Shown here in pieces: positions 34,101 to 37,100 of a stretch of 64,000 nt of DNA. Source of the DNA: Macrostomum lignano. Taxonomy: Eukaryota. A program made the translations under genes and the position numbers. Location: assembly GCA_002269645.1 (NCBI GenBank), contig NIVC01003166.1, positions 1 to 64,000 on the forward strand. The letters run 5' to 3'. Below the pieces are notes generated by a model. It was given only the letters and a program-made list of their open reading frames with translations, was not told the DNA's origin and did no database searches. Within the stretch, counting starts at the first letter, position 1. Each line of letters starts with the position of its first letter.

Positions 34101-37100
34101 TAGGTGGATGCTTGCTATCTGGGGTGCCTGCTATCTGGGGTGCTTGCTATCTGGAGATGCTTGCCTTGCTATCCAAGGGTGCTTGCTATCTGGGGATGCT
34201 TGCTATCTAAGGGTGCTTGCTATTAGGTGGATGCTTGCTATCTGGGGGTGCTTGCTATCTGGGGGGTTGCTTGCTGTCCTGGGATATTTTTTTGCATTGC
34301 ACTTCATTTGAGCAGTTTTTCTATTGTCTATGTGAAGGCTTTATTTGGCCGTCTTTTTGATACTTGTAGAGTGCCAGAGATTCTATCTAGATGCCCCCCA
34401 TCGGGGGGCGAAGATTGCTAGTTATATACTACTTTCCACTTCAGGCGAGTCCACTGCTAATTTGCGAATTCTGGCGACCCTACAACGGCTGGTATCCGAT
34501 TCGGAAGGAGATTCTCTCTCGGTCACCTTTTATAGTGCGCTACAGCGACGTGTTCACCAACGCCAGTCAGGCCGAGTCGCTTCTGCTCGAGGCTGAGAAT
34601 CGAGTAAGCTTATTTTTCGGTCCTCCCGATTGGGGCTTGTTGAACCACTTCTACTACTTCTGTCGCGAAAGCTTAAAGACCGTTAGAATTAAGTAGCTTA
34701 AGACAGTTCTTAGCTTCTAGAAGATAGAAGAAGATTTTAAAGAAATGAAGAGTTTAAGAGTGGTGATCAGTCACTCGAAAACTCCCACTTCTAGACACTG
34801 GGAAACAAGTGCCTAGGTATGTGCTAAATAAAGTATCTCTCACTGGAGCGGATCCTCTTGTAGTTGTAGACGTCTTGGTTTGGCTTTTGTGAAGTGTTGC
34901 TTAGATCAGTCCTTGCTTCATCTGTGGGTCGACCAAAAACGTGAGACCAAAATCAGAAGTCTTGACGGTGTCCTAGAGCTTGGAATTGACACGTGCGCGA
35001 GTGTGAACAATTGAATTCTCTGAGTTTCTGTAATAGGTCTTTCTGAAGGGCGTCTTCTCCGTTACGTCCGAAACGTAACGGATAACTCAAATTTATCGAA
35101 AATAAACTGCTCTCGTAAACTTAAGTATTCAACTTATTAACGCTAGCAACAAAAAATGAATCTGGTATAAGCGCTTACTAATAGGACAGAGTTTCGTCCC
35201 TCAGATACTGGTCTTCTTTGTTTCTTCGAAGTCTTCTTACAGACTTATATTTATAAAAAAATTTGGGAAAAATCCGATTTGCGATCGGATATTTACTTAG
35301 ATCATTCATGTTTGAGCATTACCATATATGGATTTAAGCAAACACAGCTGTTGAAATCGGGTTCCTTGATCGAATAGACGTTGGTCCTACATGGGGTTCT
35401 GAATCACTCTATTTGTACATGACTTTGGGTTGCAGATTAAAATAGATTTCTCCTAGAGTATTACTTTCAGTAGCACATTACGGTATAGTTAGATATGGAA
35501 AATTAAAACAGAAATGCTTATTTGCATAGTGTGAGCTAACATCTACGTAGTAGTCATCAAATGTGTCTTGAAAAATTGCAACTAGAAGAAAGCTACTGGT
35601 TATAACTTGTTTTGTTTTTCTACCAATATCTCCAAATTTTTAGATTTTTGAAGCGCCTAAAGAGAAGGATATGGCCAAAAACGAGATTAACAGACTAACT
35701 CAGTAAGTTGTTAAAGCAATCTTCTAATTCACTATTGCTAAATCCATATTTATGAATCATTATACCATGTACAATCGAACGCCCCCCCTACTTTAGAGTG
35801 CGCGTGCACTCGTTCAAGAAGCCAGTGCTGCCGTTCGATTCCAACGCTAGCAAGGCGATCATCGGAGAGTTGAGTTCGTCACCCGACTGGACGCAACGGC
35901 GCATTTTGTATCGCAGGAGAAATTTATCGAGGTAGGAAAATTAGATTTGATATTTTCATGATCAGAGCGACAGTTGTATTTTTATACAGTTTGGTAGCTA
36001 AGAAACTCGTAACTATGGTTTTTGTTTCGGAAGGTTTTCAACTACGGTCACGGCATCAGCAACAAGCCGCATTTGGCACCAAAGCTGCCTGACTTATTCT
36101 ACAACGGACTTGCCGAGGCTATCATTTTTGTGAGAATCTTTTTTTTTACCAGCTGTTCCAAAAGTTTTCGAATAGTTATATTAATAAAAAACACGTTCGA
36201 TGTTTTTAGCCAGTGGAAAATCTGGTGGGTGGCGAACTGGTGTTTCCTGATATCGACTTAAAGATTCCAGCTAGACGCGTAAGTTCTGCGGCGTGATGCG
36301 GCGCGTTTCTACCTCACTGTGACTTTTGTTTTGCACTTGAAAATCTTTCATATTGCAGTCGGATCTGATAGTTCACTACAGCTATCTGCCAACTTTCCAC
36401 ATAGATCGAAGGGGTGCTCAGCCTCTTGTCTGTCCGATTGTGTTTGGTGACAAATGGGGTGAGTAGATTATTGTCACAGACATGTTGAAAAGACAGACAG
36501 ACAGACATGCAGACAGACAGACAGACAGACAGACAGACAGACAGACAGACAGACAGACAGACAGACAGACAGACAGACAGACAGACAGACAGACAGACAG
36601 ACAGACAGACATACAGACAGACAGACAGACAGACAGACAGACAGACAGACAGACAGACAGACAGACAGACAGACAGACAGACAGACAGACAGACAGACAG
36701 ACAGACAGACAGACAGACAGACAGACAGACAGACAGACAGACAGACAGACAGACAGACAGACAGACAGACAGACAGACTGACTGACTGACTGACAGACAG
36801 ACAATGAAGGCACGAAATTGTGCTGTTGAGCATCAATTATAGTTACCAAAGTCCACCCGATGCTGAAGCATATATTGCATAAGCTCGCACACCTCAAATG
36901 CAGTTGCTCGAATCCCACTGGGTCTGTACACCTGCTCAATGGATCAGGAGGTGATGCTGGAGTACTGGATGCCAGGTGCAACGCTGTCTAGACGTCGTTC
37001 GGTATCCCGAAGCTGGACTACTCTGATCAGGCCCAAACCAGCAGCGACCAATTTAACGAACAATGTAACGACTGTTAATGGCACGAATTCAATCGAAACA

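Follow-up and report, generated by a model that had tools for sequence, protein, structure and literature searches.

Macrostomum lignano contig NIVC01003166.1 (GCA_002269645.1) carries the gene Mlig033409.g1 (BOX15_Mlig033409g1) within its first 64 kb; this whole stretch of 64,000 nucleotides is called the window below. The 714-aa product of the gene, PAA52908.1, is deposited as a "hypothetical protein" and labeled "TPR_REGION domain-containing protein" in UniProt. We conclude that it is a real, selected member of the family of collagen prolyl 4-hydroxylase alpha subunits (P4HA) and that it is almost certainly non-catalytic. In the explanation that we favor, with a probability of about 0.72, the protein descends from P4HA, carries a disarmed active site, is maintained by selection, and serves as a non-catalytic binding or regulatory subunit that likely pairs with protein disulfide isomerase (PDI).

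Homology of the product to P4HA is secure and collinear across the N-terminal domain (N), the domain that binds peptide substrates (PSB) and the catalytic domain. An exhaustive phmmer search of 1.84 billion representative sequences (cut-off E<=1e-3) returned 31 matches. One is a second model of the same M. lignano gene (P0002), and the other 30 are P4HA-type over the catalytic domain; these relatives come from bivalves, a cephalopod, a nemertean, a mite and a springtail. Names were looked up for ten matches: seven carry a P4HA name given by the source, one product is unnamed, one entry has no name at all, and one is named solely through a member of its cluster. The best relative is 29% identical (E 3e-13), and identity to any P4HA is 16-29%. 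Comparison of the three M. lignano genomic copies described below with 14 canonical P4HAs by hhalign gives a probability of 99.7% (E 2.6e-25, 442 columns); residues 77-580 are collinear with profile positions 49-509 through the N, PSB, linker and catalytic domains. Against PDB, phmmer places residues 389-579 on the catalytic domain of human P4HA2 (7zsc_A, E 3e-4), with PHLA under PHFD and PLVCP under HAACP, and matches the N+PSB double domain of P4HA1 (4bta, 2yq8) at E 0.02.

Domain models respond poorly to this protein. Pfam P4Ha_N (PF08336) scores 17.9 bits (E 0.0028) over profile positions 22-134 of 135, below its 25.3-bit cut-off, and TPR_1 is also below threshold (E 0.002). TPR_P4H has no Pfam match in the whole protein, and 2OG-FeII_Oxy_3 has none in the catalytic region alone even at E<=10, versus 1.6e-14 for a canonical relative. 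The family assignment rests on phmmer, hhalign, PDB and Foldseek, because the Pfam matches are sub-threshold or empty. The AlphaFold2 (AF2) model has a mean predicted local distance difference test score (pLDDT) of 60, with 80-94 in the region resembling tetratricopeptide repeats (TPR), 70-84 in the beta-helix core and ~30 in the tail. Foldseek finds 7zsc_A as its best PDB match (E 1.7e-9, template modeling score 0.69); P4Hs of bacteria, algae and viruses come next, and 4bta ranks after them (E 1e-3). No orthologue from another species was found in either protein search, the exhaustive phmmer search or the word-indexed homologue search; the latter returned clusters of the gene itself only. As far as the databases show, the gene is lineage-restricted.

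The residue equivalences were derived from phmmer against PDB, MAFFT and hhalign, of which hhalign and phmmer agree. Residue roles were taken from the structure paper on human C-P4H-II (PMC9676403). The state of the individual positions is as follows.

P4HA2 Tyr421, 2-oxoglutarate contact: Tyr493, kept
P4HA2 His430, iron ligand: His502, kept
P4HA2 Asp432, iron ligand: Ala504, lost
P4HA2 Thr467, 2-oxoglutarate contact: Leu531, lost
P4HA2 His501, iron ligand: Pro566, lost (Gln565 there instead in MAFFT)
P4HA2 Lys511, 2-oxoglutarate contact: Lys576, kept
P4HA2 Cys294-Cys504, internal disulfide: Cys348 and Cys569, kept
P4HA2 Cys311 and Cys529, bonds to the PDI CGHC sites: Cys378 and Cys588, kept
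P4HA2 Ile324, docking into the PDI b' pocket: Trp387 (from an ungapped extension; low confidence)

The difference at the distal His arises from a one-residue insertion in MAFFT, which sets Gln565 under it; neither alignment has a His there. The framework NYG...GG.(x)VFP...CP..G.KW is kept. The conserved R-x-A-T motif has disappeared. Canonical enzymes have ~8 more residues in the loop that follows the His-x-Asp position, and compared with P4HA the stretch beyond KW is shortened by ~6 residues. The NYGHG segment includes an extra His495; at this position the relatives carry either a hydrophobic residue or Pro. The Tyr, His, Asp, Thr, His, Cys and Lys are kept in almost all of the 30 nearest relatives, and the disarmed site is common to all three M. 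lignano copies. Cys348, Cys378 and Cys569 are invariant, and Cys588 nearly so, in a joint alignment of 20 sequences.

A preliminary description of this DNA, made from its letters, had placed an Asp to Ala change at codon 36076-36078 and a distal His to Pro change at codon 36422-36424, with the 2-oxoglutarate Lys kept, in both copies of a repeated segment. The first change is as described, both in the sequence and in the P4HA alignments; the second is returned by phmmer and hhalign alike, and the Gln565 of MAFFT is no His either. The Lys is Lys576 (36452-36454), and the same peptides recur at 42819-43243. The loss of two iron ligands therefore stands as proposed, and the site is more decayed than had been recognized, with Leu531 in place of the Thr and the loop shortened. 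The proposed P4HA-like fold agrees with the hhalign probability and with the structure model, whose fold best matches 7zsc_A. The N domain and TPR region, which were said to remain, do so at the level of the fold and of the weak P4Ha_N and TPR signals, and apparently not at the level of the groove tyrosines and Trp discussed below.

The active site of collagen prolyl 4-hydroxylase, an enzyme of the textbooks, is very stringent. The D414A and D414G variants of human P4H have no hydroxylase and no halogenase activity, small molecules give no rescue, and rearranged iron triads are also dead (PMC2767507). Since D414A or D414G alone kills the human enzyme and the distal His is missing here too, catalysis is very unlikely; by this analogy the protein is almost certainly non-catalytic, in line with the preliminary description.

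The gene has three full-length copies on different contigs, g1 in the window, g2 (L003) and g3 (L002). Their rebuilt coding sequences translate exactly to the deposited 714-aa proteins, which are 98% identical. Over residues 1-600, the folded part, the pairwise ratio of non-synonymous to synonymous divergence (dN/dS) is 0.05-0.08, and the variable codons are 24 synonymous to 5 non-synonymous (binomial p=2e-11 versus neutral). The catalytic domain (341-600) contributes 14 synonymous and 3 non-synonymous variable codons (p=4.5e-7). In the tail (601-714) dN/dS is 0.8-1.3, with 4 synonymous and 14 non-synonymous codons; the codon contrast between folded part and tail is significant (Fisher p=6e-5). 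Synonymous divergence (dS) among the copies is 0.029-0.047, and intron divergence is ~0.036. The folded part is under strong purifying selection, and the tail is approximately neutral. The codon of Ala504 differs synonymously between copies (GCA/GCG), and that of Leu503 does likewise; the disarmed state is therefore older than the copy split and has been maintained since.

Transcription of the locus can be judged from its annotation. The Mlig_3_7 gene set was made from RNA-seq (StringTie/TACO) and a de novo transcriptome (PMC5730564). Because these gene models were built from transcripts, the presence of Mlig033409.g1 among them implies transcript support. The preliminary description had named a neutrally evolving, untranscribed locus as the finding that would speak against a pseudoenzyme. 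What is found is the 24:5 ratio in the folded part of three genomic copies and, as far as it can be tested here, an annotation of transcript origin.

The protein, 714 residues long and of the secretory pathway, descends from an animal collagen prolyl 4-hydroxylase alpha subunit and retains the layout of that subunit: a signal peptide, a helical domain at the N-terminus, a TPR-like domain, a linker and a catalytic domain of the double-stranded beta-helix type. In the mechanism that we consider the most likely, it would have lost proline hydroxylation and would work as a non-catalytic module that continues to fold on PDI and to pair with it in the endoplasmic reticulum (ER), perhaps dimerizes via its N domain, and acts as a binding or regulatory subunit, not an enzyme. 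Continued PDI pairing is pointed to because the active site and the substrate loops have decayed and the PDI-contact cysteines have been preserved. The role of a PDI partner, one of those proposed in the preliminary description, thus gains indirect support from the retention of all four cysteines, two of which contact PDI. Canonical P4HA and PDI genes are presumably present in M. lignano. The preliminary description had suggested a chaperone for collagen or proline-rich proteins, and this idea appears weaker. By a hand count in a low-scoring alignment with human P4HA1, its tyrosines Y158, Y193 and Y196 of the groove correspond to Asn, Leu and Ala, and the conserved PSB Trp is absent in the low-scoring hhalign comparison of this region.

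Several points weigh against the favored explanation. The AF2 model was built on a P4HA alignment and is hence supportive rather than independent, and its pLDDT is <50 in the segments of Cys378/Trp387 and of the His-x-Ala loop. The conserved cysteines could be purely structural. The residues of the PSB groove appear unconserved, which weakens any role in binding proline-rich peptides. The protein may be secreted instead of held in the ER, since it lacks an ER-retention signal of its own. Selection was measured among copies of one genome at ~3-5% divergence, a shallow time depth. In literature and supplement searches there was no mention of the Mlig033409 gene ID or of a P4H in Macrostomum.

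The interval 36034-36458 (+), on which the preliminary description was centered, consists of three short exons with two 80-bp introns between them and canonical AG/GT borders. Mlig033409.g1 spans 28181-44109 of the contig, whose coordinates equal those of the window. A chain of 11 exons with canonical splice sites throughout, exons 1-4 followed by copy 2 of exons 5-11, translates exactly to the deposited 714-aa protein; in a protein search with a draft translation, the window product was 100% identical to PAA52908.1. The exons and the two units of the duplication are listed below.

28181-28470, +, exon 1: start codon, signal-peptide-like N-terminus, start of the N domain (exact spliced translation)
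29150-29283, +, exon 2: N domain, HP..A motif
29778-30121, +, exon 3: end of the N domain, start of the TPR-like PSB domain (AF2 pLDDT 80-94 over residues 110-300)
30467-30811, +, exon 4: TPR motif at residues 247-269, linker, Cys348 in YRRLC
32271-39043, +, duplication unit copy 1 (self-comparison, 99.3% identical to copy 2)
34445-34603, +, copy 1 exon 5: Cys378 in LLICEFW, start of the catalytic-domain extension
35644-35702, +, copy 1 exon 6
35797-35931, +, copy 1 exon 7: one G missing after 35863, frameshift as assembled
36034-36129, +, copy 1 exon 8: Tyr493, His502 (36070-36072), Ala504 for Asp (36076-36078)
36210-36278, +, copy 1 exon 9: GGELVFP, Leu531 (36237-36239) for the 2-oxoglutarate Thr
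36359-36458, +, copy 1 exon 10: Pro566 (36422-36424) for the distal His, Cys569 (36431-36433), Lys576 (36452-36454)
36904-37316, +, copy 1 exon 11: Cys588, Ser/Thr-rich acidic tail, stop codon
39057-45836, +, duplication unit copy 2 (self-comparison)
41230-41388, +, copy 2 exon 5 (exact-match reconstruction of the deposited product)
42428-42486, +, copy 2 exon 6
42581-42716, +, copy 2 exon 7: reading frame intact
42819-42914, +, copy 2 exon 8: H-x-A motif as in copy 1
42995-43063, +, copy 2 exon 9
43144-43243, +, copy 2 exon 10: Pro for His, Lys kept, as in copy 1
43697-44109, +, copy 2 exon 11: tail, stop codon

The last intron of both copies is mostly filled by a GACA microsatellite of ~78-80 units (36491-36803, 43276-43596). 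Besides exons 5-11, the tandem unit of 6.8 kb holds a 17-bp satellite, a portion of a 23-bp satellite and, from a minus-strand methyltransferase gene, a 3' fragment. Its left edge lies in the 23-bp satellite of intron 4 and its right edge in the methyltransferase coding region. Exons 1-4, which encode the signal peptide, N domain and TPR region, are single-copy at the locus, and exons 5-11 alone are duplicated. From 32437 on, the two copies differ by seven 1-bp indels, every one in a homopolymer run, by microsatellite lengths, and by 3 substitutions in ~6.6 kb. At the site of the missing G in exon 7, the sequence of copy 1 is GG, against GGG in copy 2 and GGC at the two other loci. Made from copy 1 alone, a transcript would, as assembled, leave the reading frame after Gly467 and end at codon 537. 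For the deposited 714-aa product, copy 2 exon 7 is needed, because that of copy 1 is frameshifted, and the interval 36034-36458 is therefore intronic in the deposited model. The codons given for this interval in the preliminary description are correct; that exons 1-4 occur once while exons 5-11 are repeated, and that the copy at these coordinates has a frameshifted exon 7 as assembled, had not been seen.

Copy 1 (32271-39043) could, at somewhat less than even odds, be noncoding, either as an assembly artefact around the satellite arrays or as a dead duplicate of very recent origin whose frameshift is genuine; the protein would then be encoded by copy 2 only, or by the single real copy. This is suggested by the G lacking in exon 7, by the truncation of a copy-1-only transcript after 537 codons, and by the deposited product, which needs copy 2 exon 7 and leaves exons 8-10 of copy 1 intronic. 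The same is suggested by the near-identity of the copies, separated by 3 substitutions of which one falls within the GACA microsatellite, and by L002 (g3) and L003 (g2), which have no duplication and an intron 4 of just 247-248 bp. However, placement of all seven 1-bp differences in homopolymers is the signature of long-read consensus error, not of real mutation, and for this reason we read the frameshift of copy 1 as probably such an error. Moreover, the UniProt model P0006 (958 aa), from an older assembly, runs through two tandem C-terminal copies and has an intact first exon 7, which shows that the duplication was also assembled there, that is, twice. The older and the current M. lignano assemblies may share raw reads. 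As gene models, both P0006 and P0002 look like annotation artefacts; P0002 (608 aa), likewise a model of this gene from the older assembly, leaves out exons 9-10 as well as part of exon 11 and bears the name 'Tudor domain-containing'. Copy 1 is thus a duplicate that either arose very recently or was created in the assembly, and the encoded protein and the pseudoenzyme conclusion are the same whether the duplication is real or not.

The loci L002 and L003, which are homeologous, also reveal two insertions at the window locus, at 18672-26071 (7.4 kb) and at 31036-34422 (3.4 kb, in intron 4). The former contains a Helitron_like_N open reading frame (ORF) at 21680-22552 on the minus strand (Pfam E 4e-46). 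The latter is composed of a 430-bp element and of satellite arrays with periods of 23 bp (31626-33329) and 17 bp (33334-34275). A pair of 430-bp inverted repeats (25588-26015 and 31099-31528, 93.7% identical) has one arm at the inner edge of each insertion and brackets exons 1-4; these repeats may be ends of related mobile elements. A minus-strand gene of the Methyltransf_22/FkbM type (45220-47004) is located tail-to-tail with the P4HA-like gene, and the duplication has made a truncated 3' copy of it at 38430-39071 (-), for which the fragment still gives a Pfam E of 8e-12.

Elsewhere in the window, a polycystin/PKD cation-channel ORF is found at 2765-4333 (+) and an ORF with an F5/8 type C-like domain at 7667-8545 (-). 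A DEG/ENaC (ASC) channel ORF at 17718-18671 (+) ends exactly at the boundary of the Helitron-like insertion (18672), and an ankyrin-repeat gene (1424 aa) begins near 49206. Long minisatellite arrays, whose periods are 13-93 bp, are unusually abundant in the window as a whole; arrays listed with them are at 24982-25417, 52001-52887, 53661-54506, 57035-57446, 58202-58805 and 59693-60259.

The N-terminus of the protein is signal-peptide-like, as the preliminary description had held; the most hydrophobic stretch is residues 5-23, and no second strongly hydrophobic segment is present in the 714-aa protein. The described Ser/Thr-rich acidic tail is confirmed by composition: the last 114 residues contain 15% Ser, 13% Thr and 11% Glu with a net charge of -8. 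Of the 10 N-x-S/T sequons in the protein, 6 lie in this tail, for which disorder is predicted (pLDDT ~30). The C-terminus reads ...GEEDYE and is not a KDEL-like ER-retention end. We take the acidic Tyr context of the tail to resemble tyrosine-sulfation sites. These properties would also suit secretion as a glycoprotein, such as one of the components of what a gland secretes, with a role that lies outside the ER and does not depend on PDI. The old hydroxylase fold would then be a stable binding scaffold only, kept soluble by the acidic, glycosylated tail. The signal peptide combined with the absence of both a KDEL-like end and a second hydrophobic segment speaks for secretion, as do the six sequons, the acidic end and the fast evolution of the tail (14 non-synonymous to 4 synonymous) and the apparent confinement of the gene to the M. 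lignano lineage. On the other hand, canonical alpha subunits have no retention signal of their own either; in the human enzyme, the alpha-PDI interaction maintains both the solubility of the alpha subunit and its retention in the ER (PMC12340787). All the PDI-contact cysteines are, moreover, kept under purifying selection. A secreted, PDI-independent role is a serious alternative, if a distinctly less probable one.

It is very improbable that the protein is an oxygenase or halogenase with a non-canonical metal site, in which His495, His558 or Gln565 would substitute for the lost ligands. Such a site could build on the retained His502, Tyr493 and Lys576 and on the extra His of NYGHG, and His-x-Ala is the motif of 2-oxoglutarate-dependent halogenases. 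However, halogenases retain the distal His, for which this protein has Pro (or Gln), the human D414A and D414G variants cited above are inactive in both respects, and rearranged triads are inactive as well (PMC2767507). The 2-oxoglutarate Thr is replaced by Leu, the R-x-A-T motif and the substrate loop are gone, and the oxygenase model that recognizes a canonical relative at 1.6e-14 finds no match at E<=10. A halogenase-like reading of His-x-Ala was rejected on the missing distal His and the inertness of human D414A.

Least probable of all is a decaying pseudogene family that happens to keep its ORFs: extreme divergence with sub-threshold Pfam matches, lost catalytic residues and one copy frameshifted as assembled would fit it, and it is refuted, within the shallow time depth of a single genome, by three intact 714-aa ORFs over 11 exons with canonical splice sites, by synonymous to non-synonymous counts of 24:5 in the folded part versus 4:14 in the tail with dS close to intron divergence, and by the transcript-based gene models.

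If the favored explanation holds, nature has in this protein set apart what the alpha subunit does in structure and PDI binding from what it does in catalysis. In our literature searches, no P4HA pseudoenzyme with full architecture was described as a functional protein. Such pseudoenzymes are invisible to routine annotation: here the oxygenase Pfam model missed the domain, and the product was deposited as "hypothetical / TPR_REGION". The importance of the case is limited by its narrow taxonomic range; RNA interference and transgenesis are available in M. lignano.

Comparison with known systems places the protein closest to human P4HA1/2/3 (7zsc, 4bta, 2yq8), with which it shares the domain order, the collinear profile, the best structural match and the four cysteines. 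Unlike them, it has Ala for Asp432, Pro for His501 and Leu for Thr467 (P4HA2 numbering), a shorter loop and an added acidic tail of 114 residues, and the groove tyrosines and Trp of the PSB domain are not recognizably conserved. Halogenases of the SyrB2 type (His-x-Ala...His) have the same replacement of the carboxylate ligand by Ala, here in H-L-A, whereas their distal His is absent from the flatworm protein.

CRTAP and P3H4/SC65 are ER-luminal non-catalytic paralogues of P3H1 that serve as helper subunits of an enzyme complex. Like the flatworm protein, they are non-catalytic relatives of a collagen prolyl hydroxylase, and the P3H1/CRTAP complexes 8k0e, 8k0m and 8kc9 are among the Foldseek matches. 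They belong to the P3H subfamily and have no oxygenase domain, whereas the flatworm protein belongs to P4H-alpha and keeps the oxygenase fold in a disarmed form. Drosophila CG34041 is related to P4H-alpha, contains one or two N domains and no catalytic domain, and has no known function (PMC12340787). It too is a lineage-specific member of the expanded invertebrate P4H-alpha family that cannot hydroxylate; it consists of N domains only, in contrast to the flatworm protein with all domains.

Disarmed relatives occur among the phmmer matches as well. The nemertean protein XP_074662426.1 of Tubulanus polymorphus (P0009), an uncharacterized 'prolyl 4-hydroxylase subunit alpha-2-like', is full-length and P4HA-like; its first His is replaced by Phe and its distal His by Trp, and its 2OG-FeII_Oxy_3 match is weakened (E 0.021). 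It is 26% identical to the flatworm protein and differs from it in strong P4Ha_N and TPR_P4H matches and in the absence of an acidic tail. Since the Asp is kept there and the first His is lost, its ligand loss is independent. In addition, the second catalytic repeat of an Allacma model (P0014) has His-x-Asn, a Dinothrombium fragment (P0035) has Ser for His, and a Mercenaria isoform (P0023) has the iron-ligand segment deleted. These uncharacterized gene models suggest that ligand loss recurs sporadically and independently in invertebrate P4HA expansions.

A more specific and rather doubtful version of the favored explanation is a dedicated non-catalytic partner within the P4H system. Such a protein would dock PDI and/or heterodimerize with an active alpha subunit via the N domain, and would tune, target or inhibit hydroxylation. 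If this is true, it would be the P4H counterpart of CRTAP/SC65, and the disarmed P4HA-like proteins of the nemertean, mite and springtail would represent the same solution, arisen repeatedly in invertebrate P4HA expansions.

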